A stretch of 64,000 nt of DNA, from positions 40,780-104,779 of the forward strand of contig NIVC01003307.1 in assembly GCA_002269645.1 (NCBI GenBank), read 5' to 3'. Position numbers and translations under genes: made by a program. The notes under the pieces were generated by a model. That model worked only from the letters and a program-made list of their open reading frames with translations. It did no database searches and was not told the DNA's origin. Below, one piece after another: positions 28,374-50,819 of the stretch; position 1 is the first letter of the stretch; each line of letters opens with the position of its first letter. Source of the stretch: Macrostomum lignano (lineage: Eukaryota).

Positions 28374-28414
28374 GTGAGTCCCAGTGGCGACTGCTGCAAC
28401 TCACACAGTCAGCC

Positions 28415-28760
28415 AGGAGAATCTCACCCAATCTAAGAGACCCTCACCTCAGAATCTCACCCAACCCAACAGACCCTCACCTCAGAATCTCACCCAACCC
28501 AACAGACCCTCACCTCAGAATCTCACCCAACCCAACAGACCCTCACCTCAGAATCTCACCCAACCCAACAGACCCTCACCTCAGAATCTCACCCAACCCA
28601 ACAGACCCTCACCTCAGAACCCCAGCCAACCCAAGAGACCCTCACCTCAGAATCTCACCCAACCCAAGAGACCCGCACCTCAGAATCTCACCCAACCCAA
28701 GAGACCCTCACCTCAGAATCTCACCCAACCCAAGAGACCCGCACCTCAGAATCTCAGCCA
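28415..28760. repeat. 33-bp tandem repeat in twist intron 1
   Basis: Unit CCCAACAGACCCTCACCTCAGAATCTCACCCAA. Confidence 0.93.
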
Positions 28761-28813
28761 ACTTCATATACCTGCACGAAGACATTCGCTCAACACAAAT
28801 CCAATTTGCCCAG

Positions 28814-29067
28814 ACGGAGTCAAACCAGCGACACAGTCGTGGCCTGATGCCGGCAACGGCGGAGCCTGGAACCGATTCAAGCTTGTGCGTGAAGCTGGAA
28901 GCCAAAGGCTCTGGCAACGCCGCCTCCAGCAGCCGAAAAAGAAAGCGGAGCGGCTGCTCAGACGCCGCGTCGCACTCGGCAGCGTCTGACGCCTACGATG
29001 ACAGCGGCAGCTCCGCGAGGATGATGGCCAATGTGCGGGAGCGGCAGAGGACACAGTCCTTGAACAA
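28814..29067 (+). CDS. twist: twist coding exon 2 (NLS RKRKR and the bHLH basic region MANVRERQRTQSLN)
   Basis: ANVRERQRTQSLN is diagnostic of Twist; phase-2 donor GTGAGT at 29068. Confidence 0.92.
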
Positions 29068-29144
29068 GTGAGTTCATTTCAACCCCGCGTCCTGCATCGG
29101 CCGATCGGCTGTTTGCAAACTGGTGGCCACAGGAGCCCCGAGAA

Positions 29145-30425
29145 CGATATTTGATAATCCTACAATATCCTGCAAGATATTTGATAATCCTACAAGATAT
29201 TTGATAATCCTACAAGATATTTGATAATCCTACAAGATCCTGCAAGATTTGATAATCCTACAAGATCCTGCAAGATATTTGATAATCCTACAATATCCTG
29301 CAAGATATTTGATAATCCTACAATACGAGTATCCTGCAAGATATTTGATAATCCTACAATATCCTGCAAGATATTTGATAATCCTACAATATCCTGCAAG
29401 ATATTTGATAATCCTACAATACGAGTATCCTGCAAGATATTTGATAATCCTACAATATCCTGCAAGATATTTGATAATCCTACAATATCCTGCAAGATAT
29501 TTGATAATCCTACAATATCCTGCAAGATATTTGATAATCCTACAATATCCTGCAAGATATTTGATAATCCTACAATATCCTGCAAGATATTTGATAATCC
29601 TACAATATCCTGCAAGATATTTGATAATCCTACAATATCCTGCAAGATATTTGAAAATCCTACAATATCCTGCAAGATATTTGAAAATCCTACAATATCC
29701 TGCAAGATATTTGAAAATCCTGCAATATCCTGCAAGATACGAGTATTTGATAATCCTACAATATCCTGCAAGATATTTGATAATCCTACAATATCCTGCA
29801 AGATATTTGAAAATCCTACAATATCCTGCAAGATATTTGAAAATCCTACAATATCCTGCAAGATATTTGAAAATCCTACAATATCCTGCAAGATATTTGA
29901 AAATCCTACAATATCCTGCAAGATATTTGAAAATCCTACAATATCCTGCAAGATACGAGTATTTGATAATCCTACAATATCCTGCAAGATATTTGATAAT
30001 CCTACAATATCCTGCAAGATATTTGATAATCCTACAATATCCTGCAAGATATTTGATAATCCTACCTACAATATCCTGCAAGATATTTGAAAATCCTACA
30101 ATATCCTGCAAGATACGAGTATTTGATAATCCTACAATATCCTGCAAGATATTTGATAATCCTACAATATCCTGCAAGATATTTGAAAATCCTACAATAT
30201 CCTGCAAGATACGAGTATTTGATAATCCTACAATATCCTGCAAGATATTTGATAATCCTACAATATCCTGCAAGATATTTGATAATCCTACAATATCCTG
30301 CAAGATATTTGATAATCCTACCTACAATATCCTGCAAGATATTTGATAATCCTACCTACAATATCCTGCAAGATATGTGATAATCCTACAATATCCGGCA
30401 AGATATTAGATTATCCTACAAGATC
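29145..30425. repeat. 30-bp tandem repeat (GATATTTGATAATCCTACAATATCCTGCAA)n in twist intron 2
   Basis: Direct periodicity, ~42 copies. Confidence 0.95.
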
Positions 30426-30507
30426 CTGCAAAATCTTATGATTATCGTATTTTAACGATTGACAAATTTAGCACAAAATCTGCTACACTTTCTCCCCCAA
30501 CCCGCAG

Positions 30508-30928
30508 AGCGTACGAGGAGCTCAGGCGCATTATACCGACTCTGCCGTCCGATAAACTGTCGAAAATCCAGACTCTCCGACTGGCCACTCGCTACATCGA
30601 CTTCTTGTCCACTGTGCTGCGCTGCGGCGAGGACGCGGACGACCAGCAGTACCAGCACCAGCACCCGTATCACTACCATCAGCAGTTCCATCATCTGTCA
30701 GCAGCTGCTCATCATCATCAGCACCAGCCGGGCTTCTTCGGCGGACCGACGACTGCAGCATCGGCTATGGACTGCTGCGGCCCGATTTCTGCTGCCACGG
30801 CTGCGGCTGCCGCCGCCGCGGCGGCCGCTGCAGCGGCCAGCGGAGCCGGCGGCGGCGACCGGTTGGGCTACGCATTCGGAGTCTGGCGAATGGAAGACGC
30901 CTGGAAGTCGACTGGACTGCTCAAGTAG
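30508..30928 (+). CDS. twist: twist coding exon 3 (HLH and C-terminal WR motif)
   Basis: Acceptor CCCGCAG at 30507, phase 2. Translates [34 protein letters not shown]...[16 protein letters not shown]; stop TAG at 30926-30928. Confidence 0.95.
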
Positions 30929-31199
30929 GGAATCTTCAGCTCTCACACGGGTTATTGCTACTGGGGTAGGCATGTGACTGATCACGTGACCAAATTTTGC
31001 TCTCATTCAGTGTAAATTTTGCCATTGCTATTGATTTCAACCCCAAGAATATACCCCCCCCCCTCCGACTCTAATATTACTGGATTTAGCTGACCTTAGT
31101 GACACCAGTTACGTTTCATCTATAATACGTTAGTCGAAAGTCATAGTGTTGACCCACTCACTGTGAACGTACATATTATGACCGTCTAGAGCGCATGAA

Positions 31200-31835
31200 C
31201 GTCAAGGATGGTAATCTGTATGAGCCTCAAGGATGGTCATCTGCATGATCCTCAAGGATGGTCATCTGTATGATCCTCAAGGATGGTCATCTGCATGATC
31301 CTCAAAGGATGGTCATCTGTATGATCCTCAAAGGATGGTCATCTGTATGACCGTCAAGGATGGTCATCTGTATGATCCTCAAGGATGGTCATCTGTATGA
31401 TCCTCAAGGATGGTCATCTGTATGATCCTCAAGGATGGTCATCTGCATGATCCTCAAGGATGGTCATCTGCATGATCCTCAAGGAATGGTCATCTGTATG
31501 ATCCTCAAGGATGGTCATCTGTATGATCCTCAAGGATGGTCATCTGCATGATCCTCAAGGATGGTCATCTGTATGATCCTCAAGGATGGTCATCTGCATG
31601 ATCCTCAAGGATGGTCATCTGTATGACCTTCGAAGATCGTCAGTTGTATGACCCTCAAAGGATGGTCATCGTTATGAGCCTCAAAGGATGGTCATCGTTA
31701 TGAGCCTCAAAGGATGGTCATCGTTATGAGCCTCAAAGGATGGTCATCGTTATGAGCCTCAAAGGATGGTCATCGTTATGAGCCTCAAAGGATGGTCATC
31801 GTTATGAGCCTCAAAGGATGGTCATCTGTATGACC
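31200..31835. repeat. 25-26-bp tandem repeat (TCAAGGATGGTCATCTGTATGATCC)n
   Basis: Direct periodicity, lying between the convergent twist and SAC1 3' ends. Confidence 0.93.
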
Positions 31836-32194: not shown

Positions 32195-32343
32195 TCAAAC
32201 AGTTGATCGTTTTTGGCGACTGAATTTCTGGCCTAATCGGGGCCGGTCAACGAAGTCTTCGCCGTAGTAGAAAATGCCGAATATTGCCAACACCACAGAT
32301 GTGCACCAGAATAGCGAGAATAACATCTGCTCCGACCAGTGCT
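32195..32343 (-). CDS. SACM1L: SAC1 exon 7 (last): second TM helix and tail
   Basis: EHWSEQMLFSLFWCTSVVLAIFGIFYYGEDFVDRPRL...stop; phase-1 acceptor TTGCAG; AATAAA downstream (~32051-32060). Confidence 0.9.
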
Positions 32344-32396
32344 CTGCAACGTTAGGGAATTAAGCTAGCTTTGCTGTGTCCATGTGGCTGATATCC

Positions 32397-33525
32397 TCAA
32401 ACCCACTCAGCGAGTCTGAACAACCCCTCAAATCCCCGTCAGCGGGTCTGACAACCCCTCAAATCCCCGTCAGCGGGTCTGACAACCCCTCAAATCCCCA
32501 TCAGCGGGTCTGACAACCCCTCAAATCCACGTCAGCGGGTCTGACAACCCCTTAAATCCCCTCAGCGGGTCTGACAATCCCTCAAATCCCATCAGAGGGT
32601 CTGACAACCCCTCAAATCCCCTTAGCGGGTCTGACAATCCCTCAAATCCCATCAGAGGGTCTGACAACCCCTCAAATCCCCTCAGCGGGTCTGACAATTC
32701 CTCAAATCCCATCAGAGGGTCTGACAACCCCTCAAATCCCCTCAGCGGCTTTTACAACCCCTCAAATCCCCTCAGCGGGTCTGACAACCCCTTAAATCCC
32801 CTCAGCGGGTTTTACAACCCCTCAAATCCCCTCAGCGGCTTTAACAACCCCTCAAATCCCCTCAGCGGGTCTGACAACCCCTCAAATCCCCTCAGCGGGT
32901 CTGACAACCTCTCGAATTCCATCAGCGGGTCTGACAAACCCCCAAATCCCATCAGCGGGTCTGACAAACCCCCAAATCCCATCAGCGGGTCTGACAACCC
33001 CTCAAATCCTATCAGCTGGTCTGACAACCCCTCAAATCCCATCAGCGGGTCTGACAACCCCTCAAATCCTATCAGCTGGTCTGACAACCCCTCAAATCCC
33101 ATCAGCGGGTCTGACAACCCCTCAAATCCCATCAGCGGGTCTGACAACCCCTCAAATTCCATCAGCGGGTCTGAAAACCCCTCAAATTCCATCAGCGGGT
33201 CTGACAACCCCTCAAATTCCATCAGCGGGTCTGACAACCCCTCAAATTCCATCAGCGGGTCTGACAACCCCTCAAATTCCATCAGCGGGTCTGACAACCC
33301 CTCAAATTCCATCAGCGGGTCTGACAACCCCTCAAATTCCATCAGCGGGTCTGACAACCCCTCAAATTCCATCAGCGGGTCTGACAACCCCTTAAATCCC
33401 ATCAGCGGGTCTGACAACCCCTCAAACCCCCTCAGCGGGTTTTTACAACCCCTTAAATTCCCTCAGCGGGTTTTACAACCCCTCAAATCCCATCAGCGGG
33501 TCTGACAACCCCTCAAATCCCATCA
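32397..33525. repeat. 30-bp tandem repeat in SAC1 intron 6
   Basis: Unit CCCTCAAATCCCATCAGCGGGTCTGACAAC. Confidence 0.95.
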
Positions 33526-33567
33526 GGTTTAGAATGGGCCTTAATAGAAGAGCATTAAACAGCTCAC

Positions 33568-34107
33568 CTGGCGGCAGCAGAGCGCCCATAGTGAGCATAG
33601 TTAATCCAAACAGCAGCACTGACGGCAACAGCCAGACTTTCCAATCGCGACCCTGAGCAAACGGACTCAACTCGCCTCGCTCCGGCAGGTAATTGCCCAG
33701 CAACAAATCTATAGCGTCCTGTCGCCAGCCGTCGTAGAAATTATTCCTAGCGTAGCGTACTGCGCTAAAATAGGCGTCGCGCAGGGCGCCGAATTTGGTG
33801 CGCCGGCCAGTCCGAGTGAAATCGGCCTTCAAAGCGCCGGTGCCGGCGTACTGCAAAGACAATTCGTCGGCATTGTCCGACCAGGCAAGCTTGATGACCG
33901 ATTCTAGAGACTCCGCGTCCGGATTGGTTTTGGATTCGCTACTATTACTACTAGTAGCGTTGTTAGCAAACAGAGCGGCATAGCCAAGATCGGCCAGCTG
34001 ACGGGCAAGGGCGCGCCTAGCCAGCAGGCACTGGGCAACATTGGTGCGGTCTAGACAGTCGATGCAGTTGACGCGAAATACCGAGTGCTGGGTGCGCTGC
34101 GGGGAGC
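33568..34107 (-). CDS. SACM1L: SAC1 exon 6 with the catalytic CX5RT motif
   Basis: VFRVNCIDCLDRTNV...WSDNADELSLQYAGTGALKADFTRTGRRT...NNFYDGWRQDAIDLLLG; phase-1 acceptor CCCTAG and phase-1 donor GTGAGC. Confidence 0.95.
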
Positions 34108-34347
34108 CTAGGGAGGAGAGGGGATGGCAATGTCAAAGCGACAAGTTAACTCGCAGCTAATATTTCTAAACGCGCGTGTACTGAAAAGAGTAGTGTGCCC
34201 GCAATAGGCCAGGACCGGTTACTGACTTCCTACTCAGCACTCTTCGTCAGCTAAACCTAAACCACAGAGCCAGAACCTCGCCTGTGGAAGTCCTTTTCAA
34301 CTAACAAACCATAGGGAATCCGCTTCACATTCTTTTCTTTCTGAATA

Positions 34348-35006
34348 TTGGTTTTGACAATCAATATGAGAAAATGGACAATCAAAATGAAAACAGCCGT
34401 AGATCTGCATGCAGCAGCTCAGCTCAGCTTCGCAGCAGCTGCGGCTTAGGCCAGACTTTTGACGATCGAAATGAGAATTGGACAATCAAAATGGCAAGGG
34501 GAGCAGTGTGCGCGTTTATTTGAATGAAATTTTAACAATAGAAACGAGAAATTGACAACAGAAATTCACGAATCTCCTCATCCACCTTGCACCTTGCTTC
34601 TTTTCGGCCTCCACGAGGCATACCGTTCATCCTTCCCTCATTCCTGTACAGCCTCACGATGCGATGAGCAGTTGAACTTGACAGCTGAAGGATTATTGCT
34701 GCGTCCTTGACCGGTGTGCCTCGATCTATTGCCTCGATGAGCCGACGTCTGTCATCTGGACTCACAGGTGGTGCCATCACCAGCAAACTGGAGAGATGGC
34801 TGAGAAAGATGGCTGGCTAATGCTTAAATGTGCTGCCTCGCTAAACTAACCGCGCGTTGCCATTTTGATTGTCCAATTCTCATTTCGATCGTCAAAAGTC
34901 TGGCCTAAGGCGCAGCTGCTGCGAAGCTGAGCTGAGCTGCTGCATGCAGATCTACGGCTGTTTTCATTTTGATTGTCCATTTTCTCATATTGATTGACAA
35001 AACCAA
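34348..35006 (-). mobile_element. Internally deleted Tc1/mariner (IS630-like) DNA transposon with 150-bp IR/DR-type TIRs and TA TSD
   Basis: 34348-34497 and 34857-35006 are near-perfect inverted repeats flanked by TA. Each TIR holds two ATGAGAA(A/T)TGGACAATCAAAATG direct repeats. The internal ORF 34532-34786 encodes an HTH (RRRLIEAIDRG...DAAIILQLSSSTAHRIVR...PRGGRK) but no DDE domain. Confidence 0.88.
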
Positions 35007-35128
35007 TAGTACGAGCTTGAATCTTTCTTTTTGAGCTCCACTAAACCCCCTCTGATCACCAAGCTTAAATCGTTATTAACTATAATTTGTCTAAAACACA
35101 TCGATAAAAGCTAGATCGAGTATTGTCT

Positions 35129-36558
35129 ATGGTTAAAGTCGCGTAAGCTAGCAGAATAATCGAAAATTTCAACTCAAATAAGCAATTTTAGCAACAGATA
35201 AGAACTCGAAAGCTTAATCTTTACGAGCGTAGTTATTTTATTTTTGCACAAAAGTCCAAATACCAACTGCAAGATATGTACGCCGGACTGAGCTACAAGA
35301 AGCAGTACCTGCTGCAGATCACAGACGCCAGCTTGAAGATGTTCAGCGACACGCGCGTCAAGGCCGCCTGCAACCGCACCAGCTGCGTGTTTGCCGTTAA
35401 AAACAAAATCCTCACCAGAAAGCTCGGAGGCACGCAGGCCATGCGATTCTGCATCTTCGAGATCAAGGGGCCGAGCGAGCTCAGCGTAGACAAGTGCAAT
35501 CGCATCATTGAGCAGCACTTTCCCGACTACAAGCTGCGCAAGGACTACAACGAGAAGGAGGTGGCCGTCAGCGTCAGGCTGAAGGTCGGGCAGTGGACGC
35601 CTGACAACACCAGCCTGTACTTCCTGAACCAGCGCTACGGGCTGGGCAAGGGCCGGCCCGGAGACCTGCAGAGAACTGGGCCAGAGGATGGAGATGGAGC
35701 CATGAAGCAGGGTGAGGAGCTCGTCATGACTCACACCTGAGCCTGAGTTCTGACGTGTGTTTTCGTTCAATATTGGTCTTTTTGGTCCTGTAAACAGATC
35801 CTGATCCACCTGACATGGCGCCCCAGCACTGCCAGATGCAGCCTGCAGATTCCTCCCGATCCACCTGACATGGCGCCCCAGCACCGCCAGATGCAGCCTG
35901 CAGATTCCTCCCGATCCACCTGACATGGCGCCCCAGCACCGCCAGATGCAGCCTGCAGATTCCTCCCGATCCACCTGACATGGCGCCCCAGCACCGCCAG
36001 ATGCAGCCTGCAGATTCCTCCCGATCCACCTGACATGGCGCTCCAGCACTGCCAGATGCAGCCTGCAGATTCCTCCCGATCCACCTGACATGGCGCTCCA
36101 GCACTGCCAGATGCAGCCTGCAGATTCCTCCCGATCCACCTGACATGGCGCCCCAGCACCGCCAGATGCAGCCTGCAGATTCCTCCCGATCCACCTGGCA
36201 TGGCGCTCCAGCACTGCCAGATGCAGCCTGCAGATTCCTCCCGATCCACCTGACATGGGACCTCAGCACCGCTAGCATTCTGCACCTCCCCCGCCCCGCA
36301 GGCAACTCGATAGTGGAGTCCCTGGCCCGGAGTCTTCAGCAAGACTGGCCCGGCGCAGGGGACCTGGGCGGAGGCGGCGGCCGCCGGCGCTCCGTCAGCC
36401 AGGGCCCGCAGCACCGCCGGTTCACCGGGGCCGCTGCGGCCGCGGCAGCCGAGGAGGAGGCCCTGAGTCGCTACATGGGATTTCGCGAGCGAGAGGAAAT
36501 TTTGAAAAATGAGATTAACAGGCTGGAGTCGTACCTGAGCAACCTGCAGCTGGCTTGA
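35129..36558 (+). CDS. Nested antisense gene of unknown function in SAC1 intron 5; exons 35129-35142 (tentative), 35233-35711, 36302-36558
   Basis: Open frame from 35198 to a phase-1 donor GTGAGG at 35712 joins a phase-1 acceptor CCCCGCAG at 36301 and continues to TGA 36558 with coding-like GC3 bias. The start is uncertain: ATG 35129 via a 90-nt GTAAGC..TAG intron, or ATG 35276. Confidence 0.65.
35803..36258. repeat. 55-bp tandem repeat, ~8 copies, in the intron of the nested gene
   Basis: GATCCACCTG recurs at 35803, 35858, 35913 and onward. Confidence 0.95.
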
Positions 36559-37674
36559 TGAAGGACTGCCCTGCTCCAACAGGTGAGCGCCAGCTTAAGA
36601 CAAGTTGGGACCAAATTTTGCAACCAGCTTTAACAATCCACCTCACTCATTGTCTGTGCTGAAGGCATGCAGCGGTGACTCAATTGAACCAACGGCCCAC
36701 TTGCTAAAACTTGTCGAGTCTTGCAGCATAACAAACAGTTGTATATTTTACGAATAGCATAATTTTTTTAGTCGAGTTCTTTGTTAAACACGCACTTTCT
36801 TTGTTATAAAAAGCCAGTTTTTTAGGCCAGTTGCTCTTTCCTATATATTCAGGTTTTTGTCAGGCGCGCATCTTTCATATTGCTTTATGGCCATCTTTTC
36901 TTCTGCTTCTCTTTATGATTATTAGCTAATCTGCAGGCAATAAGTTTCTTATTAGCAGGAACAAGCCTTTGTCTCTGCTCATTGTTTTGCAACGCTCTTT
37001 TTAAACTTCTCCGCTGTCATTTGGGGAGGTTTTCTGAACCAAAATCGTTGAAAACTTATCCAAATACAGTTTCTTTTTTGGTTTTCATGTGTAGTATTAG
37101 TACTTCAGTCCAGCACTTATTCTGCGCCACAGACACTAATAAGATGGCCCATTCGGCACATACATGCGCAACAGTCGGCCGAGTCGGCCGACCGATTTGG
37201 CGGCCAATCAAGGAAGTCGCAAAAATGCCCACCCGAAAACGCCCACTACGTAGTATTAGTACTAAGTAGCTGACGAGGCATTTTGACTTAATAAGACAGT
37301 CATAGTTACTCTTGCCGTTTACCCAAAGTTGCGTTAATTTTTCGTTGTTTTTTTTACATGTAAGTCGCATTTTTGGCCAAAAACTTCGTCGCATTTTTGT
37401 TAAAACTAAGTCGCAAGGCCGACCGAATTTTGGAGGTTGCGCATGTATGATTCGGCATCTTTGATTGGTCCTGTCAGTTCAGTAGCAAGAAACAATGTGT
37501 AGGCTATTTTATTGAAAGAATGGCACTTGAAGACCGACCTCCAGATGTCAACAACCTGCTATTGGCGCAAACGCAACCAGTAATGTACCGTACACGAAGA
37601 TGTACATGGACTAGAAATACACTGAAGGCAGTAAAGGCAGTTTTGTGGATGACGTGGTCAGAGGGATTTAGCTA

Positions 37675-38140
37675 GGGGATGTGGGATTCTTGAAATTGAG
37701 ATGGGGTGTGGGATTCTTGGAATTAGGATGGGGTGTGGGATTCTTGGAATTGAGATAGGGTGTGGGATTCTTGGAATTAGGATGGGGTGTGGGATTCTTG
37801 AAATTGAGATGGGGTGTGGGATTCTTGGAATTAGGATGGGGTGTGGGATTCTTGGAATTGAGATGGGGTGTGGGATTCTTGGAATTGAGATATGGTGTGG
37901 GATTCTTGGAATTGAGATAGGGTGTGGGATTCTTGGAATTAAGATGGGATGTGGGATTTTTGGAATTAAGATGGGATGTGGGATTTTTGGAACTGGGATG
38001 GGGTGGGATGGGGTGTGGGATTCTTGGAATTGAGATGGGGTGTGGGATTTTTGGTATTGAGATGAACTGTGGGATTCTTGGAATTGAGATGAACTGTGGG
38101 ATTCTTGGAATTGAGATTGGATGTGGGATTCTTGGAATGG
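37675..38140. repeat. 27-bp tandem repeat (GTGTGGGATTCTTGGAATTGAGATGGG)n in SAC1 intron 5
   Basis: Direct periodicity. Confidence 0.93.
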
Positions 38141-38258
38141 GAGCCTTGTCCAAAAGTGGCATTATATAAAGTGTTTTCAATAAACTATCAGATAGCTGAG
38201 CATATATAAAAATTTTCTGTGATAATAAGAAACACAAGTGCACATCCCGGTTGCTCAC

Positions 38259-38514
38259 CATCAGGAGCGGCCTGGAAATATCCCATAGAGTCAAAGTCTG
38301 GCTCAGTCCGCTCCAGCAGCAGACTAAGCCGGTCCCATCTCAACCGGCTGCACTCGCGATGAAAGTCGAAGTGCTCGTAGCGGAGACCATCAAAACGGCG
38401 AGTCACCTCTGTCAGGCTGCACATCCGGCTGAACTGGGCGCACAGTTCGCGTTCTTTGCCTACGGCGTCTAATAAATTGACAATTACCTGGTTGCCATAG
38501 CAACGGGTGAACAC
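38259..38514 (-). CDS. SACM1L: SAC1 exon 5
   Basis: VFTRCYGNQVIVNLL...YEHFDFHRECSRLRWDRLSLLL; phase-0 acceptor TTTCAG and phase-1 donor GTGAGC. Confidence 0.93.
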
Positions 38515-38585
38515 CTGAAAGAAATTAGGCTAATATATTTATATTGTTAGTCAGCAAAAAATAACAATATTTTTGCATTGCGCAG

Positions 38586-38671
38586 CCTCCATCAGCAGCA
38601 AATTATAAGTTTGCAGCATATTGCTAATAGTAGTTGCAATCAGATGAAACACGGATTGACATCATTGGAAG
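38586..38671 (-). ncRNA. Box C/D snoRNA, copy 1 (guide UCCGUGUUUCA, antisense to 28S rRNA UGAAACACGGA)
   Basis: Minus strand: CTTCCA stem, box C ATGATGT, guide TCCGTGTTTCAT, D' CTGA, ..., box D CTGA, TGGAGG stem. It ends ~70 nt from the 3' splice site. Confidence 0.85.
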
Positions 38672-38789
38672 ACTGACAGCTGAGTTATATATCAGGCCTA
38701 ATCTATCTTTTATAGATTAGACTTATATATTAGATTATAGATAGATTACGGGATAAGAGTTATTAGGATTAGGCTGAGACTAAGGATTA

Positions 38790-39925
38790 GGAACAGGATC
38801 TTTGGAATCGGTATTTGGGACTCATGATTGGGATTCTTGGAATCGGTATTTGGGACTCATGATTGGGATTCTTGGAATCGGTATTTGGGACTCATGATTG
38901 GGATTCTTGGAATCGGTATTTGGGACTCATAATTGGGATTCTTGGAATCGGTATTTGGGACTCATGATTGGGATTCTTGGAATCGGTATTTGGGACTCAT
39001 AATTGGGATTCTTGGAATCGGTATTTGGGACTCATAATTGGGATTCTTGGAATCGGTATTTGGGACTCATGATTGGGATCCTTGGAATCGGTATTTGGGA
39101 CTCATAATTGGGATTCTTGGAATCGGTATTTGGGACTCATAATTGGGATTCTTGGAATCGGTATTTGGGACTCATAATTGGGATTCTTGGAATCGGTATT
39201 GGGGACTCATAATTGGGATTCTTGGAATCGGTATTTGGGACTCATGATTGGGATTCTTGGAATCGGTATTTGGGACTCATAATTGGGATTCTTGGAATCG
39301 GTATTGGGGACTCATAATTGGGATTCTTGGAATCGGTATTGGGGACTCATAATTGGGATTCTTGGAATCGGTATTTGGGACTCATAATTGGGATTCTTGG
39401 AATCGGTATTTGGGACTCATAATTGGGATCCTTGGAATCGGTATTTGGGACTCATGATTGGGATTCTTGGAATCGGTATTTGGGACTCATGATTGGGATT
39501 CTTGGAATCGGTATTTGGGACTCATGATTGGGATTCTTGGAATCGGTATTTGGGACTCATGATTGGGATTCTTGGAATCGGTATTTGGGACTCATGATTG
39601 GGATTCTTGGAATCGGTATTTGGGACTCATAATTGGGATTCTTGGAATCGGTATTTGGGACTCATGATTGGGATTCCTGGAATCGGTATTTGGGACTCAT
39701 GATTGGGATTCTTGGAATCGGTATTTGGGACTCATGATTGGGATTCTTGGAATCGGTATTTGGGACTCATGATTGGGATTCTTGGAATCGGTATTTGGGA
39801 CTCATGATTGGGATTCTTGGAATCGGTATTTGGGACTCATGATTGGGATCCTTGGAATCGGTATTGGGGACAAATGATTGGGATTCTTAAAATCGGTGTT
39901 AGGGACTAAGAATTGGGATTCTTAG
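38790..39925. repeat. 35-bp tandem repeat (GGGATTCTTGGAATCGGTATTTGGGACTCATGATT)n between snoRNA copies 1 and 2
   Basis: Direct periodicity, ~32 copies. Confidence 0.95.
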
Positions 39926-40007
39926 GATTGAGAATCAGAACTAGAGAAGAACATTTATCCTCATATATAGCATAAGACTAAGCGACAAATCTCCCATATT
40001 TTTGCAA

Positions 40008-40097
40008 GGTGCTCAGTTATTAAAAATGTCAATCATTGGAGGTCAAAGTGACAGCTCCAATCGGATGAAACACGGATAATCACATCATTGCGGCACC
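40008..40097 (-). ncRNA. Box C/D snoRNA, copy 2
   Basis: GGTGC stem, box C ATGATGT, guide TCCGTGTTTCAT, D' CCGA, TTGGAG..CTCCAA hairpin, C' ATGATT, box D CTGA, GCACC stem. Confidence 0.9.
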
Positions 40098-40150
40098 GCC
40101 CCCCCCCTAAGTCAAGCTACTGTCAGATGGTAAGTAAAACAGGCGCTCAC

Positions 40151-40471
40151 CTGATCGCTAAAATGGGCAACAAACGCATCGAACTGTTTATCCCAATCTT
40201 GACTAACAGTAGGCGCTGGCTTGTACAATAAATTTGGATACTGAGACCAGATTAATGGCACTGAGCCACGAGTCTGGACAAAGCTAAACAGAGTCTGAGC
40301 ATTCGGATTAGCTGTTGGATTAGTCCCAGCTGACGAAGGCACCGACAGAATCTGTTCAGTTTCAACAAAATTAGCCGCGTAGCCATCCTCGTCGAGGCCG
40401 CGTGTGTAGTAGCGGACTCCGGCCCTGTGTCGGGAGCGCCGGCTAATCAGCGCGTAGTCTATGGTCCGGCC
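40151..40471 (-). CDS. SACM1L: SAC1 exon 4
   Basis: [35 protein letters not shown]...[23 protein letters not shown]; phase 0 at both ends. Confidence 0.95.
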
Positions 40472-40789
40472 CTGGCGGCGATTCGGTTTATTATGCCGTT
40501 AATTTACTTGCTTAATAGTAGTGCTACTAACAGTAGCAAGATTAAAATCATTATTATGCAATTGAAATATCTTTTTTGAAATAAAAAATTACGAAACTAG
40601 GCTTACTAAAGCGGTCCTAAGTTTGTCTAAACCTATGCTAGGGTCCTTCTGAGGAAGGGAGCAGATCAGATCAGTATGACTCTCGCGCCACAACTTCTGG
40701 TTCCATTCCACACTGATTTTGGACTTGTATGTGCACGAAAGTTGGCCAAGAGGTTGTTTTGCGATGCCTGGAGATTAGAAAGGCCTCAC

Positions 40790-41310
40790 CTTGAACGGCA
40801 CAGTCCTGACGCAGACAAAGCCGTGCACAACTGGCAGAGCAAATCTTGGAAAGCGTCTCAGCTTAATCAGAGAATTATAATTCCATACAAATCGATCGTC
40901 GGCTCGATCGCACAACGGTGTCGCATCAACAACAGCAGCAGCGGCCGCCGGTGTCGCCATGTAGTCAACCGATTCCGCCGCGTATCGACAGGCGCTTTGA
41001 AGACTGCGACTGAGATCTGTGGTGTAGGAGAAATAATAACCTGGCGTGCGTAGGGACTCGCGAACCAGCTGCAGGTAAATCTCGTTGTCAGCCGCGGCAG
41101 TCTCAGTTAAATGCAGGCTAGATCGGCAATACGGCAAAATGTCCGCAGACTCTACACGCCACAGACTGTGACCGCGCAGGTTGCCGACATGCCGACGGGC
41201 CTGCACTATCAACAGGTGAGGGCCAGACAGCAGCTGCAGGACGCCCCACAGGCCGTAGATTGTCGTCGGTGGTGTACCAACGATGAGGCGGGAGACAGCG
41301 GATGAGTCCA
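40790..41310 (-). CDS. SACM1L: SAC1 exon 3
   Basis: IYGLWGVLQLLSGPHLLIV...YYFSYTTDLSRSLQ...RADDRFVWN...FALPVVHGF; phase-1 acceptor ACCCAG and phase-0 donor GTGAGG. Confidence 0.93.
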
Positions 41311-41414
41311 CTGGGTTGGCGAGTGGTTGTGGGATTAGGATTAGGAATGAGAGGCAGTGGAAATTCTAAATTTCTAGCTGCTTGATCTTTGCATTTCTTT
41401 CTTTCTTTTGTGAG

Positions 41415-41915
41415 ATATGGAATTCGAAATTGAGATCGGGATTATCGAGAGTGAGATAAGGAATTCGGGATTAGAGATCGGGATTATTGAGAGTGAGATA
41501 GGGAATTCGGGATTAGAGATCGGGATTATTGAGAGTGAAATAGGGAATTCGGGATTAGAGATCAGAATTATCGAGAGTGAGAGGGAATTCAGGATTAGAG
41601 AATGGGATTATCGAGAGTGAGATAAGGAATTTAGGATTAGAGATCGGGATTATCGAGTGAGATAAGGAACTCGGGATTAGCGATCGGGATTATCGAGAGT
41701 GAGATAAGGAACTCGGGATTAGAGATCGGGATTATCGAGAGTGAGATAAGGAACTCGGGATTAGAGATCGGGATTATCGAGAGTGAGATAAGGAACTCGG
41801 GATTAGAGATCGGGATTATCGAGAGTGAGATAAGGAATTCGGGATTAGAGATCGGGATTATCGAGAGTGAGATAAGGAATTCGGGATTATCGAGAGTGAG
41901 ATAAGGAATTCTAAT
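41415..41915. repeat. 42-bp tandem repeat in SAC1 intron 2
   Basis: Unit GAGATCGGGATTATCGAGAGTGAGATAAGGAATTCGGGATTA. Confidence 0.93.
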
Positions 41916-41946
41916 CGGGGACTTAAATCCTTCTCAGAGCAGCGTT

Positions 41947-42039
41947 GTGACATCAGCAGATATCGAATATTGTCACTCATTGGAAGCCATGAAAGACTGC
42001 TCCATCGGATGAAACACGGATGTACACATCATTTGGCAC
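41947..42039 (-). ncRNA. Box C/D snoRNA, copy 3
   Basis: GTGCCA/TGTCAC stem, box C ATGATGT, guide TCCGTGTTTCAT, D' CCGA, TGGAGC..CTTCCA hairpin, C' ATGAGT, box D CTGA. Confidence 0.88.
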
Positions 42040-42099
42040 TGCTGTTAAATAGTAAACACCCCCTGCCCTAATTTCGTTAAACAGTACAGAAAGTTGGTA

Positions 42100-42203
42100 A
42101 ATCAGCGCTCAGCAAAAAAATTTAATGTCAATCAGTAGGAGAGCCAGGAAACCAGCTGATCCGCACATCTGATGAAACACGGAAAGACATCACTGCACTG
42201 ATT
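42100..42203 (-). ncRNA. Box C/D snoRNA, copy 4
   Basis: 9-bp stem AATCAGTGC/GCGCTGATT, box C GTGATGT, guide TCCGTGTTTCAT, D' CAGA, C' CTGATT, box D CTGA. Confidence 0.88.
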
Positions 42204-42258
42204 GCTTGTGAATTAGACATATCAATATTCTGCTTGTAAAAAAATACTGTCTACTTAC

Positions 42259-42350
42259 TAGTGATTGACATATCGCCTGTCTGCCTGTCAATAATAAGCG
42301 TTTCCAGGCCATTGTGCGGCTGAATAACAAACTTATCTGGGGTGTTGAAC
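42259..42350 (-). CDS. SACM1L: SAC1 exon 2
   Basis: FNTPDKFVIQPHNGLETLIIDRQTGDMSIT (compare SAC1 ITPEKFYVE...LTIDR); phase-2 acceptor TCACAG and phase-1 donor GTAAGT. Confidence 0.88.
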
Positions 42351-43166
42351 CTGTGAGTCAATTTTGAACAAGTAGAATAATATAGTAGAAGAAATACTTG
42401 AATCAAAAGTTTTGTACAGATATAAAAAGAAACAATGCCTTGTCTTGTCATCTAATTAGCACTATGTCTATATTTTTGAGTTGGCATTTTTGCAACTTAC
42501 CTTGGCCAGACCTCTTGCCTCCTGGCCAAATAAGCCAGGTTGGCTGGGTGTTGGGCATGTATATGTTAACACTATTAATCTTCTTGCTATTTTAAATATA
42601 CATATAATATATTTTTTCTTATTAATAATCAATATTTCTTAAAATTAAAATAGCTTACTTTACAAAGAATATATCATATAAAAGAACAAAAGTTGATTCT
42701 TTGTTTTATACTATAAAAATGTTATCAAATTTTATTATTAAAATGCCTAGTAATAGATTCAAACCAATTTTCCTTAGCTAAAAATTTTAAAGCCTATGGA
42801 ACTAGTATCCCAATAAATAACAACCATTTTTAAACAATTACTAGGCCCTAGCCATACACTTGAAGATGTTGTTTTTGAGGGAAAATTCAAAGTGTTTAAC
42901 AATATCAAATTTTTGCAATTTTTATCAAGAATTGATGTTAAGCCCAATTAGCATCTAATAGGCCTATTTTCACTTTTCTATTAGCACTAATACACCATTT
43001 TACCTCCAATTTTGAACAAAGTCTTCTTCAAAAGGAACAAGCAGAACTTCAATTCAAACACTTAGCTGGAAGAAGATGGAATCAGTGAATTTGAAGCAGA
43101 ATTCAATGAAGATATCATGGAACAACAGCCTTGGCAGTGCGCTATTGTAAGCAACAGTGACAGAGA

Positions 43167-43358
43167 CAGGGGCATAGCCAGGAATTTCCTATGGGGGGGG
43201 GATACACCAAGGTGAATTTTCTACAGGGGGATACACCAAGGTAAAACTACCATGACAGAGTCACATGGTAGCGTGTATAGCAACAAAGGGCAACAAGAAA
43301 GTTTTGGTCAGGCTCTTTGGGGGGATACATCCCCATATCCCCCCTCCCTACACCCTTG
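43167..43358. mobile_element. Possible short MITE relic
   Basis: CAGGGGCATAG start and CTACACCCTTG end form an imperfect ~11-bp inverted pair; G/C-run subterminal motifs; no convincing TSD. Confidence 0.3.
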
Positions 43359-44241
43359 GACCATATCATCAGGGCTGTTGATTGTGGGGATGACTTTGTG
43401 GCCCGTTAGAAAAGTTATGCACCTGCAGAGGCATAAAAGGTGAGCAAGGTGCACAAAAGAGGCACTTTAGTGGCCTATTTTGTGTGTGCTTTAGAAATGC
43501 CCTGAGTGCACCTTTTTGCCTAAATGTCATCAATATTTTTGAAAAGAGGCATAAAAGTTGTAAAATTGGTGAAGTGGTTAGGCAGTAGGTGAATTCTTAA
43601 TTTTGATTGGTTGCAGCAATAGGGGCAGTAAAGGTGTGGTGCATAAGGGGCACTGGAAGTGCACAAAAGGTAAACAGCAGGCTCACAAGTGAGGCACAGC
43701 AGGTGAAGGAAAGGTGCTAAAAGGGCACAGAAAGTGCATGAAAGGTGAATTAGAGGTGCATAAGGTGTACATGTGTGGCATAAATATGTATACAAGTGCA
43801 TTTCCAAAACACGCTTGAAAAAGACCCCTTAAGTGCCTCTTTTATGCACTTTGCTTATAAATATTTTTATTATTACTGCATCCAAAATTTTAGTGAATAA
43901 ACAAAACCTTTTACAAAACAAGGATTTGTAGAATATCAGGAAATTACACTTAGGATTTATTAAAAAATGGAGGCCAATTTCCAAATGTTGCTTCTGACTT
44001 TTCAGAATTTTTTATGAAGAAAATTTTTGTCTAATAGATGAATCACAATGAGTAGAATGCTTTAGGCAACTTTAGTTTGCTTGGGTCATTCTTGTTATCC
44101 TACTTGTATTATGCTATAGTTTTATAGCAGCTATACTTTAAACATACTTTAAACAAGGATGTTTATTGTTCTGGATGTGTCTTGTTTCAGCATTAGTAGT
44201 TACCAATAATTATACTTTATTCTATGATTCTATTAGTATAT

Positions 44242-47200
44242 TGTGGTGTTCGTGTGGCCAAGCAATCTAAAGTTTCTCTTGGCGGTCGTGTGTATTATAA
44301 AGAATAGAATACTCTCTATGGTACAAGCATAGATAAATGAAATGAATAGTCAGTCTGGGGATACCACATCCCTCCACCTTTAGTAAAATCAGTTCATTGT
44401 AGGGAAACGAACTGGCCTCCTCAGTACAGTCTGTGGTCGGAGTCCACTTCTGTGCATTGTTCTTGGATCACACTGTGGTATTTCGGATGCGTCCCTCTTT
44501 TCTCGCTGACTGTCGCTCATTCCTCCTCCACCAGAAAACGTTACCAGAGCCTTGTCAGATTCTGTGTCTGGGAATATCTTTCTGGCCTTGTTAACGTGGC
44601 ACTTCTTGATTGTGCCACTTTTGTTCTCCAGGATCAGCAGTCCTCCGACTTGCTTCCTTACATAGTATTGCTGTGTACCAAAAAAACTATCGTACTTGTT
44701 CTTTGCTTCCCTTTCAATCACTACTGTGTCACCTGTTTTGATGTCGCAGTCACGAGCGTTCCGATTAGCGTAGTTGGACATTTTTCTTTTGTAGTCGGCG
44801 TCTTTATCTTTCTGCTTAATCAAAGGATCTATTGTCTCGTTGTTCATTTGAGGAAGTTTTGTCCGCGTGCTCCACTGAAAGAAAAGGTTTGCTGGCGCTA
44901 CGCCTGTTGCTCTCATTGGTGTTGTTCTGTAGGTGTGCAAAAAGATTTGCAATTCCTCTTCAAAACTTGATCCATTCAAAATTCTGGATCTTCTGATGAC
45001 TTTGTTCAATGTTTCATTGAATCTTTCCACCTCCCCATTTGCTGCTGGGTGACGCAGAATTATCCGAGAGTGAATGACGCCTTGACTGTTAAGATATTCG
45101 TCAACAACTTTTGAACAGAAATTTGTTCCGTTGTCTGAGACGAGTTCTTTCATTGGTCCAAATAGTGATATCACTTTCTTTAGAATTTGCACTACGTCGC
45201 TTGCTTCTGTGCGCTTCATGATGAACACTAGAGGAAATCTCGAGTGGTAGTCGATGAAAACTAGCAGGTTGCTACCATTCGGAAGTGGTCCTTTGAAGTC
45301 CATTGCCACTTTGTCCCACGGCTTATCCGGAATTTCCGTTGGCACAATTGGGATCCGACTTCCTTTTTTTGTTGTGTGGATACACACATTGCATTTCTTG
45401 CAAAAGATCTCCACGTCTTTGCTTATACCAGGCCAAAATATGGTACTTTGCAGTCATTCTTTAGCTTTGGAAATGCCTTGATGTCCTTCATGGGCAATTA
45501 ACAGAGCTTTTTGTCGCAGACTCTTCGGCAAGACAATGCGGTCTTTGTACAGGAGAATTCCATTCTGCTCCGATAGTTTATTTCTTTCTGCAAATAGTTT
45601 GTTGTGCTTTTTCCATGTTTCTCCTGATACTATTGATTCCAGTGCCTCGACAATTTCATCATCAATCGCAGAATCTTTTCGGATCTGCTCTAAGCTCAGA
45701 GCTATGCTTACTGCGCATTCAAGTTTGCTGTTAATGAATGCAATGTCGCGTCGATTGCAGAGTGTGTCGTTTGGTGTTTTCACCGGTTGTCTTGACAAAA
45801 TATCTGCCTCATTGGTGTCGCCTGGTTTATATTTTATCTTAAAGTTGAATGGCTGCAATCTCATTGCCCAACGCTCAATTCTTGGTGGTGGTTTTGAGTT
45901 CGATGCAAAACATCCGAGTAGAGGTTTATGATCCGTTATTATGGTAAATTCGGCTGCTCCTTTGAGAAAGTGAGAAAATTTATCGCATCCCCATTTAATT
46001 GCCAATGCTTCTCGCTCGATTTGACTATATCGAGTCTCCACGTCTGTGAGAGTTCTACTGGCATAGCAAACTGGCTGTAGATTTCCATCTTTCTGCCGCT
46101 GAACCAAGATTGCACCAAGACTGACAGGACTAGCGTCTACTCGCAGCTGAGTTTCTCGCCCTGTTCCAAAGTACGCGAGCGTTTCCGTTAAGCTGATCGC
46201 TGCTTTGATGCTATTGAAAGAATTTTCTTGTTCTGGACCCTATTCCCAGGTTTTTCCTTTCTTTGTGAGGTCATTCAGAGGCTTCGACAAGGTTGCTAGG
46301 TTTGGTACGAATTGAGCAACAAATTGTGCTAGACCAAGAAACGATTTAACTTCACTTGGATTGCACGGTGGTTTGAACATTTGAATAGCTTCCGTTTTCT
46401 TCTCGTGGATAGTTATTCCCTTCTCAGTTAGAATAAATCCCATAAAAGTAGCTTTACTCATTCCAAATTTGCATTTTTCCTTTCCAACGGTCATGCCATT
46501 CTTCACGAGCCTTGCTAAGACCTGCTTTAGCCTGTTGTTGTGTTCCTTGATGTCCTTTCCATACACAATTATATCATCCTGAATATTTAGCAGTCCTTGT
46601 AAACCAGCCAAAACTTTTGTCATGTAGGCTTGAAGATAGAATGACGAGTTGACCCAACCCATTGGCAATCATTTGTACCTGTATAGCGGTTGTCCAGGGA
46701 TTCCTGTTGAGAATGTTGTCAGATGTCTAGATTCACTGTCCAGTTCAATTTGATGGAACATTTTCTTGCCATCAATGTAGCTGAAGCAGCTTGCTTCTCC
46801 CATATTGGTGAGCTGATCATCCAGAGATGGGATAGGAAATTGTAGCTTTTCCGTTGCCTCGTTTAAGTTTCGTAAGTCAATGGTCAGTCGTACCTTACCA
46901 GTCTTTCCTTTTGGGACGACAACGAGCCGCGAAAGCCATGCACTGGGACCATCAACTTTCTCTATGATTCCTGAGTTTTCCTGCTCTTCCAGTTCTTGTA
47001 GGAGTGCTTCTCTGAGATGGGCAGCTACTCTTGTTATCGATTGTGATGTCGGCATGCTTCCTTCCTTCAGAGCAATGGTCACTGCTGGCTGCATGGTCAA
47101 TCTACCAACTCCCTGAAATACCTCCTGATGATCTTTCAGAATTCGTTCGATTTCTTCGTTTTTCTTCTCAATCTGATTGATCGTTATCTGCAGCAAATTC

Positions 47201-48612
47201 AAATCGATGCTGTCTTGACATCCGAGTATTGTCTCAGCGTTGATACCACACGTCACGATAAATTTGATTTGCTTCCCTGAGTCTCCAGCCATCACAACCA
47301 GTGTTGTTGTTCCCAAGACTTCCAGCGCCTTTTTCGACATATAGGCATATAGTCTTGGCTTTTCTGATCTGTTTAGGACGGTATCCTTTGACTTCACCGA
47401 CTCCCACAATTTCATACTTATCAAACTTGCTGAAGATCCGGAGTCAATGAGCACTGTACTCTCAATACCATTGATCTTCACTTTGGCTCTTGCGCCTGCT
47501 GATTCCTTCGATTCAGTCATAGCGACAGTGTTGATCTCTTCATCATTCGGTTTGTTGTTGCCATTTTGCTCTTCCGGTTGCTCAGATATCTGAATATTTC
47601 TGGTTTTTATTCTGCTCCCTGTCTTTAGACATAGTCTACATGCTTGCTTGATGTGCCCTTTCTTATGGCAAAATTTGCATTCCATGTTACGAGCGAAGCA
47701 ATCCCAGGGACGGTGACCTGTTCTGTTGCATCTGTAGCAGACTCGATCAAACTTGTTGGTGTTTGGAGTTGATGTCCGCTTGTCAGTCTGTAGCTTGTTA
47801 GTTGGTCTGTTGTCGATTTTGCTGACCGTGTTGCGCGCCTCATTGGTTGGTTTTTCAATGTCTTTAGCCTGCGTTTTTGTTGCTTCAAAATTCTTGCTGA
47901 TTTCTACTGCCTTCTTTAAGGTGAGGTCAGAGCCTTCCTTTAGCAGCAGAGTCCTTAGCGGCTTTGACGTGCTCTTTAGGACTATCAGATCGCATAGCAG
48001 ACGATCCTCAAAGCTGAGCTTCACTGTACTCTCGTTTCCTCCAGGCTTGTACTTGACGTGCAAGTTGCAGTACTTTGCTGCACTTTTTAGACGACTGTAG
48101 AAGGAATCAAACGTTTCTCCCTCTATCTGGCTAACTGACAGCAGCTTGTAAGTCTCATGGACACTATTGGTTGCACCTTGGAATAGAGAGCTGAGCGCTT
48201 CCTTCGTTGCTTTGTAGCCTTGTTCATAGCTTACGGTTTGCAACAGCTTTCGGATTTTCGGCCCTGCTAGAAGCAAGAATGTAGCTTGCTTCTTTTCGTC
48301 GGCTATTCCTTGCACTTCCATGAACAGCTCGACTTCCTGCACATACTCGTTCCACTTATCTGCATTGTTGAGCAGATCTTCGTCTGGATCGAAATGCCCA
48401 ATGCTGTAGAACTGTGCTGAGGCCATCCTGCGAGGTATTTTCTCAATAGTACATCCGTAGCTTTTCTCTTTTCACCGTTGCCACCAATGTGGTGTTCGTG
48501 TGGCCAAGCAATCTAAAGTTTCTCTTGGCGGTGGCGTGTATTATAAAGAATAGAATATTCTATGGTACAAGCATAGATAAATGAAATGAATAGTCAGTCT
48601 GGGGATACCACA
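44242..48612 (-). mobile_element. Full-length Ty3/Gypsy LTR retrotransposon (probably Mag-like) in SAC1 intron 1
   Basis: LTRs at 44242-44368 and 48488-48612 (TG...CA); TSD TATAT; PBS TGGTGGCAACGGTG (48473-48486, probably tRNA-Leu); PPT AAAGGTGGAGGGA next to the 3' LTR; domain order gag-PR-RT-RNH-INT. Confidence 0.95.
44389..48426 (-). pseudogene. Single-frame gag-pol of the Gypsy element with three in-frame nonsense codons
   Basis: Two CCHC knuckles (CYRCNRTGHRPWDC, CKFCHKKGHIKQAC); protease LIDSGSS; RT IQDDII; RNase H DASPVSLGA/YASRTL/TDHKPL; integrase DFKGP..DNG..EVERFN. Stops at 46669-71 (YK*LPMG), 46240-42 (WE*GPE) and 45454-56 (KE*LQS), all in the same frame. Confidence 0.9.
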
Positions 48613-50796
48613 TATATAATACTAAAAACATGCTTTAACGTAAAAAGTAAAAACCATTTAATCTAGGATCATCTCTTTTTTATCTTTGTATAATTATACA
48701 AGTATTTTGGTGAAAGTTTTGCACTTTTGGGAAATATTTATTGCTAAGTTAGCTGTTTGGCACCTAAAATTTCATTTTTAAATACCAGAGGACCAGATTT
48801 ATAAAAAAGTAACTTCTATTACCCAAGTCTAGCATTCTAAAAAAAGAACTAGAAAAAAGAGCCACTTTAAATTTTTAGTACTAAAAGTGCTAGAAATGCC
48901 AGAATGTTGTCCAGCACTGGAATATACTAATATATTACAAAAAATCTATAAAAAATTAGAACTTTTGCAGAAGCAACACATATTAGATGGCATTAATGGT
49001 TATCTGGCTTTCTAAGAAATCCACTATTACCACTCCCTCAACATCATAGAAGATAGTCACCAAATCTTGCTGCAAACCTTTCCACATAGAACTTCTTGGG
49101 GCCCACTAAACTTTGTGGCAGCCACTACTTGGATTGGACCTTAGACTTGGGATTGTACTGAAATATCCATGTTTCATCCCTAGTCACTAAGCGCTAATAA
49201 AAGTTTTCTGAATCAGTATTCAAGCAGTTTAGCAGGTTGATAGCACACCCAGTGCATTAAACCCAATGTTCAAGCCATAATAGCCATAGGACTCAGTGGG
49301 TATTCTATGGTCAGGAAGGTGCGCTATGTGTGCCACAATAAATCCCTAGTCAATTTTTTAATTGTACACTGTATGCCAAGTAAAAAAGTGCTGTGCATGC
49401 TAAGAAACTTATTTTAAATTTTGATTTTTTTCTTTAATATTAATAAATAACAATTGTTGTAATATTTTAATTTTTTAGTATATAAATGCCTAACACCCAT
49501 TTGACCCATCTGAACTAGACAGGTAAAATAGCCATTGGCCAAGGTAAGTTGCAAAATTAAAAATGCAAAAAATAAAAAATTGGAAGAAAGGAAGGAGAAG
49601 AGAGAGAGAGGGAGAAAAGAGAAAAGAAACATAGAAAAAAAAAGAAAAAGGCAAGTCATATACAAAATGAAAATTAAGTTGCAATTGGAGGAACTAAGTT
49701 GCAATTGGGAAGAACTAAGTCACAATTGGGAGGAACTAAATTGCAAATCTGGACAAAACTAAGTTGCACCAGATAGATAAAATTTTGAGGTTGGGTATAT
49801 ATGCTTCAGAAAAATATTGTTTGTAAATTTAGAAAAAACTTTTTTGTACTGTTTGAATTGAATTGAACATTTGAAAAGGAGCACATACACTTTATATATC
49901 ACACCTTACATGTAAACTAAGATTTTACTATTGATTGTACCAAGTGTGGCATACTATATGCTATGTATATGTTATGTGCAATAGAAAATTCCTTTGTATA
50001 CACCACATTTTTGCATGAAATCTATTACTTTTTTGATTGTGGCAGGTAATTAGCTTGCTCAGACCAAGACAATCTACATCACAATAGAATGAGCATTGCC
50101 ATAGGAGATAGCCACTTGGATAGCAATATCATCTATAGTCATGCACCAATCTTGCTTAATCACCTGGTGCATAGCTACCACATTTTCTTCCATACATAAT
50201 GTTGTGGGCCTTTCTGATTATTGGGCATCTTCTATGGACTTTTAGCCATTTTTAAAAGCCTAAATCTAGTAGTAAATGGTTCAATCTGATGGAGCAGTGT
50301 CCCTATGGACCTTCTTCAAATTATCAATGATTTTGGCTAGCTTCCAACTAAGTTTACAAGAAACTTCAACTTAGTGCAAGCTTTGATTTTTTAGTTTTTC
50401 ATTGCTAAAAGGGTATACATACTATGATACATACTACATACTATGAAGGGTATGCATTATCATATATATAGATATTTATCACTTTAGAAAAACCAAAACT
50501 CTGTCAAATAAAGAACAAAAGGTGTTTTTTTCAAATGAAACTAATTGCAATTCAATACCTTTTATATTTTAGACATTACAACAAAATTATCATTACTATT
50601 TTATGTTACCTGTATATATATATTATTTGAACAACTTGAATATAAGCTTATATATATTTTTTATGCCTAATATATTAGTAATTAGGGCCTAGGCTGAATA
50701 ATTTATTGATAATTAATCATATTCATAACACTTCTTTCAGTTAAGGCCTACTAGTACTAAAAATTTAATAAATAAAGCATAGAAAAATGTACTTAC

Positions 50797-50819
50797 AAGC
50801 TTAAAACTTCATAAATCAT
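50797..50819 (-). CDS. SACM1L: SAC1 exon 1 coding part (MIYEVLS-L)
   Basis: ATG at 50819; YEVLSL resembles the SAC1 N-terminal YEQLKL; the phase-2 donor GTAAGT matches the phase-2 acceptor of exon 2. The seven exons sum to 1902 nt (633 aa plus stop). Confidence 0.72.

Follow-up and report, generated by a model that had tools for sequence, protein, structure and literature searches.

Four predicted SNORD126-type box C/D snoRNA genes in two introns of a SAC1 gene of the flatworm Macrostomum lignano

Introduction

SNORD126 (Rfam RF01168) is a box C/D small nucleolar RNA (snoRNA) whose Rfam consensus runs AUGAUGA...GUCCGUGUUUCAG|CUGA (D')...CUGAUUAaACA (C')...CUGA. In human it lies in the host gene CCNB1IP1, where it was first listed as an orphan (PMC1636440). 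It has since been assigned to Am1323 (Am1310) of the human 28S ribosomal RNA (rRNA) (PMC9941101), a variably methylated and tissue-restricted site that carries the modification in differentiated cells and little of it in cell lines (PMC10939407). Here we describe four predicted relatives of this snoRNA in a 64,000-nt stretch of Macrostomum lignano DNA (contig NIVC01003307.1, positions 40,780 to 104,779 of the forward strand), hereafter called the window. They lie in introns 2 and 4 of a gene for the SAC1 phosphoinositide phosphatase and, as we think very probable, guide 2'-O-methylation at one predicted A of the large subunit (LSU) rRNA.

A second family, SNORD18 (U18, in yeast snR18; Rfam RF00093), has a guide that pairs with the same rRNA stretch, also upstream of D'. 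Its D' box comes 3 nt earlier, after ...CCGUGUUU, which shifts the methylated base by 3 nt downstream, to the A of CAC. Vertebrate SNORD18 occurs as several intronic paralogs within one host gene, RPL4. Introns with two snoRNA genes each, as in SAC1 introns 2 and 4, are known from the snoRNA-ended long noncoding RNAs (sno-lncRNAs) of the Prader-Willi region and RPL13A. No literature on Macrostomum snoRNAs was found.

Results

The 12-mer ATGAAACACGGA has four exact matches on the plus strand of the window, at 38644, 40065, 42009 and 42172, against a chance expectation of 0.24. The preliminary description of this DNA had drawn attention to the recurrence, which is real, and had placed three of the matches correctly; the fourth, given as 40067, was off by 2. 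The only match with one mismatch is at 49166, and none of 100 shuffled windows gave five exact and one-mismatch matches together. This near-match was considered as a fifth snoRNA and rejected as a chance occurrence, since it is without snoRNA boxes.

All four copies are intronic and lie on the minus strand, that is, in the sense orientation of SAC1. From 5' to 3' each of them reads stem, box C, short spacer, UCCGUGUUUCAU, D', hairpin, C', AU-rich spacer, box D, stem. The guide consists of the 11 nt UCCGUGUUUCA followed by a U before D', and TCCGTGTTTCAT is common to all four. Copy A (42100..42203, minus strand) measures 104 nt with its stem and has box C GUGAUGU at 42187-42193, the guide at 42173-42183, D' CAGA, C' UGAUUGA (CTGATTGA), box D CUGA, and a 9-bp terminal stem, AAUCAGUGC/GCGCUGAUU. 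Copy B (41935..42044, minus strand), 110 nt long with its extended stem, has box C AUGAUGU at 42026-42032, the guide at 42010-42020, D' CCGA, C' UGAGUGA (ATGAGTGA), and box D CUGA, closed by an interrupted terminal or external stem of 5-7 bp. Copy C (40008..40097, minus strand; 90 nt) has box C AUGAUGU at 40082-40088, the guide at 40066-40076, D' CCGA, C' UGAUUGA (ATGATTGA), box D CUGA, and the 5-bp stem GGUGC/GCACC. Copy D (38583..38675, minus strand; 93 nt) has box C AUGAUGU at 38659-38665, the guide at 38645-38655, D' CUGA, a degenerate C' (ATGCTGCA; AUGCUGCA), box D CUGA, and a terminal stem of 6+3 bp with one bulge. Position 7 of box C, a U, is able to pair with the base that precedes box D, which is G, G, A, and G in copies A to D. 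The hairpin between D' and C' abuts both boxes in every copy and differs in sequence (GGA/UCC, GGAG/(C)UUCC, GGAG/CUCC, and UUGC/GCAA); that of copy D is weak, at -1.4 kcal/mol.

To compare the copies, anchored manual alignments were used instead of MAFFT alignments, which misplaced box C or box D. In the anchored alignment of the four copies, any two guides agree at 12 of 12 positions, and the boxes hardly differ. Outside boxes and guide the copies are near random, with identity at 0-5 of 10 stem positions and at 15-38% of hairpin positions. Stems and hairpins thus differ in sequence between the copies and retain their pairing, which points to compensatory change. No two copies have the same spacer from box C to guide (CUU, GUACA, GAUUA, and CAA), so the identity of the guides does not reflect a gene-conversion tract. 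The anatomy and the divergence of the remaining sequence were both as first described. We infer that the four copies persist under selection limited to boxes, stems, and guide, and with boxes C, D, and D'/C', stems, and guide all present, we take them to be four complete box C/D snoRNA genes.

Further copies were sought in the window with a scanner for box C, a box D 45-135 nt away, and a stem of at least four Watson-Crick pairs, and with nhmmer using a profile of the four copies; neither search, the former on both strands, found any. Over the 128 kb of both strands the scanner retrieved copies A, C, and D and one other match, which lies in an open reading frame (ORF) of a retroelement, and shuffled sequences gave 0-4 matches. 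ARAGORN found no tRNA in the window.

The LSU segment CCCGUCUUGAAACACGGACC is universal and corresponds to the LR3 primer site. With UGAAACACGGA, which lies within it, the guide UCCGUGUUUCA forms an 11-bp duplex of -17.2 kcal/mol. By the D'+5 rule, the methylated base is the one opposite the fifth guide position upstream of D', and the rule applied to this guide points to the central A of GAAAC, in CUUGAAACACGG of the 28S rRNA. A comparison of consensus lines showed the guide register to be that of the Rfam SNORD126 consensus, ...GUCCGUGUUUCAG|CUGA, while the SNORD18 consensus, ...UGGUCCGUGUUU|CUGA, is 3 nt shorter than the window copies. From these registers, the predicted site lies 3 nt 5' of the U18 site and coincides with the SNORD126 site. 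The claims of a shared D' guide with a D'+5 target and of a position 3 nt upstream of the U18/SNORD18 target are thereby upheld. The proposed Drosophila equivalent, A771 (snoRNA Me28S-A771), could not be verified in the searchable literature and serves as a lead only. The proposed equivalence with human 28S A1323 agrees with the published pairing of Am1323 (Am1310) with SNORD126 (PMC9941101). In planarians, the available RiboMeth-seq map (PMC11649923) is too sparse to place the predicted site. Ahead of box D the sequence is AU-rich and unconserved among the copies, and for this reason it probably has no target.

In architecture, guide register, and predicted target, the window copies are as SNORD126, and their C' region, UGAUUGACA, appears similar to its UGAUUAaACA. 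They differ from it in the interval between D' and C', which holds a hairpin of 20-32 nt as opposed to about 6 nt in the SNORD126 consensus, and in the spacer between box C and guide, which has 3-5 nt against about 13. In addition, their box C ends in U, their host gene is another one, and there are four of them. With respect to SNORD18, the window copies have three extra bases (CAU) before D'. An identity with SNORD18 was considered and rejected, as the copies contain no alternative D' box in the SNORD18 register.

Searches against Rfam, at gathering threshold over the whole window and at E ≤ 10 over the snoRNA region and over copies A and B, gave only a meaningless 19-bit match to SNORD83 that was driven by box C and stem. 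Metagenome contigs were then scanned with the pattern TGATG-N(2-16)-TCCGTGTTTCANCNGA, which comprises box C, guide, and D'. At least 120 contigs match it, with 131 matches listed (loci L008-L125), and the statements on environmental sequences that follow refer to these listed matches. About 70 of the 131 are complete C/D snoRNAs, with C' UGAUUA 5-8 nt past D', box D CUGA, and stems of 4-11 bp; the remainder look like chance matches in bacterial coding sequence. Several contigs carry two to three copies each (L045, L048, L053, L077, L083, L104, and L122). None of the environmental relatives reached the Rfam threshold, four of them scoring 25-33 bits against SNORD126, for which the gathering value is 55.

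The environmental relatives resemble the window copies in having UCCGUGUUUCA-N-CUGA, C' UGAUUA, box D, and a terminal stem, which measures 5-11 bp in them. The box C form that ends in U, RUGAUGU, which all four window copies have, is the commonest among them (30 of 51), and in a few (L029 and L120) a hairpin likewise separates D' from C'. On the other hand, they are shorter, with a median of about 77 nt, and their D' is CUGA in 47 of 51 cases, compared with CAGA, CCGA, CCGA, and CUGA in copies A to D. A U before D' is found in three of the 51 and in all four window copies. A hidden Markov model (HMM) built from the 51 environmental sequences only matched all four window copies with E-values of 8e-8 to 8e-5, and its alignment with copies A, C, and D extends from box C over C' as far as box D, with the hairpin as an insertion of 14-26 nt. 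The fishing pattern is itself contained in the window copies, so that only the agreement in C', box D, and stem is independent evidence. Judged by sequence, the window copies are unannotated members of a widespread SNORD126-type family, and hence of an already known functional class.

Some environmental relatives have a conserved second guide upstream of box D, either AGUCUUCUUUCCCUGU (L008, L010, L012, L032, L078, L085, and L118) or (A)UCUGUUUGACU (L013, L063, L081, L106, L116, and L121). A second target site is thus probable for both subgroups. The Macrostomum copies lack a conserved guide of this kind.

The host gene, SAC1 phosphoinositide phosphatase of M. lignano, occupies 32198..50819 on the minus strand, with exons at 50797-50819, 42259-42350, 40790-41310, 40151-40471, about 38254-38514, about 33542-34108, and 32198-32344. 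The translation of the exons that flank the copies is a SacI-homology-domain protein (Pfam Syja_N, E = 2e-75), with 98% identity to M. lignano BOX15_Mlig019972g2 and about 42% to SAC1 proteins from animals. These matches bear out the original naming of the host and the sense intronic location of the copies; their distribution has to be corrected, as the four copies occupy only two introns, with two in each. Intron 2 (41311..42258, minus strand; 948 nt) holds copies A and B. Copy A begins 55 nt past the 5' splice site, and another 55 nt separates it from copy B. After B, whose end is 624 nt from the 3' splice site, comes a 42-bp minisatellite (41410-41889). Intron 3 contains no snoRNA. Intron 4 (38515..40150, minus strand; 1636 nt) holds copy C, 53 nt past the 5' splice site, and copy D, which ends 68 nt before the 3' splice site, with a minisatellite of 32 35-bp units (38802-39923) between the two. 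In mammals, splicing-dependent processing of C/D snoRNAs is favoured at about 70 nt from the 3' splice site, and only copy D is located at such a distance. Copies B and C also share their upstream flank (UUAGGG...GUGCC), which speaks for duplication at the DNA level and against retroposition of a mature RNA. In our reading, the four copies arose via DNA duplication inside the SAC1 gene.

A second version of the locus is found on contig NIVC01003172.1 (L001), which is collinear with the window at 93-97% identity and represents a haplotype or homeolog. All four guides are present in it, copies C and D are identical to those of the window, and copy A is distinguished by 3 inserted nt ahead of C' and by one T in the spacer. 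Copy B has suffered a 46-nt deletion between GCT microhomologies, which takes out C', spacer, and box D. Copy B is therefore dispensable on the L001 chromosome, and not every copy need be active. The remnant (L001 16100-16110) forms a perfect 8-bp hairpin, GAGCAGCC/GGCUGCUC, followed by CUGA. The distance between copies C and D is about 1.42 kb in the window and 1.74 kb in L001, consistent with about 32 and 41 units of the 35-bp repeat, respectively.

SAC1 was also inspected as a possible host elsewhere. Neither the guide nor a match to the snoRNA profile was found in a divergent M. lignano SAC1 paralog (L002, 54% identity) or in SAC1 of the nemertean Lineus, the annelids Owenia and Capitella, and the hemichordate Ptychodera, and tblastn of SAC1 proteins against the 120 environmental contigs listed gave no match. 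Because the SAC1 genes examined and the listed contigs gave no such pairing of snoRNA and SAC1, the use of SAC1 as a host looks lineage-specific.

Discussion

If the four SAC1 copies are guides of 2'-O-methylation, as we consider very probable, the intronic RNAs would be freed once the introns are spliced out or cleaved, and would be shortened to the ends that the small nucleolar ribonucleoprotein (snoRNP) with Snu13, Nop56, Nop58, and fibrillarin protects. The 11-nt UCCGUGUUUCA upstream of D' would pair with the LSU segment UGAAACACGGA, and fibrillarin would methylate the central A of GAAAC, which corresponds to Am1323 (Am1310) of human 28S rRNA. The hairpin between D' and C' would draw these two boxes together. 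With two genes per intron, the snoRNAs would be separated by endonucleolytic cleavage, or a snoRNA-ended long RNA would result.

Several observations weigh against this interpretation. The Rfam comparison proposed in the preliminary description was run, and no window copy matched SNORD126 at gathering threshold or at E ≤ 10. The presence of the target in M. lignano 28S rRNA is deduced from the universal conservation of the LSU segment. The RNAs taken as a whole have unremarkable thermodynamic z-scores, a common finding for C/D snoRNAs. The C' box of copy D is degenerate, and copy B is truncated by the deletion in L001. Finally, the flanks around the copies are near-identical between the window and L001, which leaves a comparison of constraint without power.

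The alternative that survives best is that the family is real and that some of the four copies are decaying or inactive, so that only a subset gives a functional snoRNP. We regard this as unlikely, though clearly worth considering. Copy D combines its degenerate C' with a weak hairpin, the terminal stem of copy B is interrupted and its L001 counterpart is without C' and box D, and copies A, B, and C are far from the distance of about 70 nt to the 3' splice site that is favoured in mammals. However, the 12-mer, box C, D', and box D are intact in all four copies despite a near-random remainder, and a long-inactive copy would have lost these elements too.

It is a good deal less likely, in our opinion, that the introns with two snoRNAs yield sno-lncRNAs, whether in addition to free snoRNAs or in their place. 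The stated prerequisite of a sno-lncRNA is a pair of snoRNA genes within one intron (PMC4234469), and this layout is present twice, with A and B in intron 2 and C and D in intron 4. In intron 4, moreover, C and D lie 53 nt from the 5' and 68 nt from the 3' splice site and flank the tandem array, a layout that is kept in L001 with a different repeat number. Against this, sno-lncRNAs are documented in mammals only, and endonucleolytic separation of clustered intronic snoRNAs is equally available. The array is polymorphic in length and similar minisatellites occur in other introns and in the flanks, so that it looks like genomic filler. The specific form of the idea, in which intron 4 would give a sno-lncRNA of ~1.5 kb with C and D as its ends and 32-41 units of the 35-nt minisatellite as its body, appears slightly more doubtful still. 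Should it be true, intron 4 would produce a satellite RNA stabilised by snoRNPs, which would be the first non-mammalian sno-lncRNA, and the repeated 35-nt unit might serve as a multivalent protein-binding platform. A specific function of the satellite RNA is unlikely, though, because similar satellites fill the whole locus.

There is little to recommend the view that the guide acts on an RNA other than the LSU rRNA, or that these are orphan snoRNAs with a role in cis in SAC1 splicing. An 11-nt guide can match other RNAs, and human SNORD126 was itself initially listed as an orphan (PMC1636440). Nevertheless, the guide matches perfectly and in the correct register a universally conserved rRNA site that is methylated in human, and the same guide recurs across many unrelated environmental eukaryotic contigs with unrelated flanks. 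As to the remaining explanation, that the 12-mer recurs by chance, in a dispersed repeat or transposon fragment, or in antisense pieces of ribosomal DNA, the surroundings are indeed very rich in mobile elements and repeats, but it is effectively refuted, and we give it next to no credence, by the four matches observed against 0.24 expected, the end of the rRNA similarity after 11 nt, the full set of boxes with its own compensating stem in every copy, and the want of any extended repeat common to the copies.

Read as methylation guides, the SAC1 copies would add four so far unannotated snoRNA genes to the M. lignano genome and predict one 2'-O-methylation site in the rRNA of a flatworm model. 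The SNORD126-type guide, which Rfam curates as a narrow family, occurs widely in eukaryotic sequences of public metagenomes, and this distribution implies that methylation of this A is old. The locus may also provide a case of introns with two snoRNAs in an invertebrate; current understanding is otherwise unchallenged. On the sequence evidence, these are real but ordinary snoRNA genes, with the D'-C' hairpin, the two copies per intron, and the SAC1 host as local peculiarities.

Other features of the locus

Successive SAC1 introns contain different minisatellites, with units of 42, 35, 27, 55, and 30 bp at 41410-41889, 38802-39923, 37676-38138, 36000-36258, and 32395-33526, respectively. The sequence ATTCCAAGAATCCCA is common to the 35-bp and 27-bp units. 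On the 3' side of SAC1 there is an array of a 17-bp unit in 285 copies (4.85 kb), followed by four further arrays with periods of 32, 33, 30, and 25 bp; the arrays span 20921-25770 and 26925-31833.

Intron 1 contains a Ty3/gypsy-like retroelement at about 44200-48700 (minus strand) with gag-protease, reverse transcriptase, RNase H, and integrase domains. Its reverse transcriptase is split over two ORFs and is thus frameshifted. The element is missing from the otherwise collinear L001, so its insertion is polymorphic between haplotypes or homeologs. In intron 5, at 34346-35008, a pair of 152-nt inverted repeats that are 99% complementary surrounds an ORF of 84 amino acids with HTH_23/HTH_28 domains, and this element resembles the remnant of a small Tc1/mariner-type transposon. 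In L001, the public annotation places a gene of 228 amino acids antisense to SAC1 in intron 5 (L001 21661-22827, minus strand; about 35270-36560 of the window, plus strand). The window ORFs that match it, 35276-35740 and 36145-36558, have no Pfam match and overlap the 55-bp repeat.

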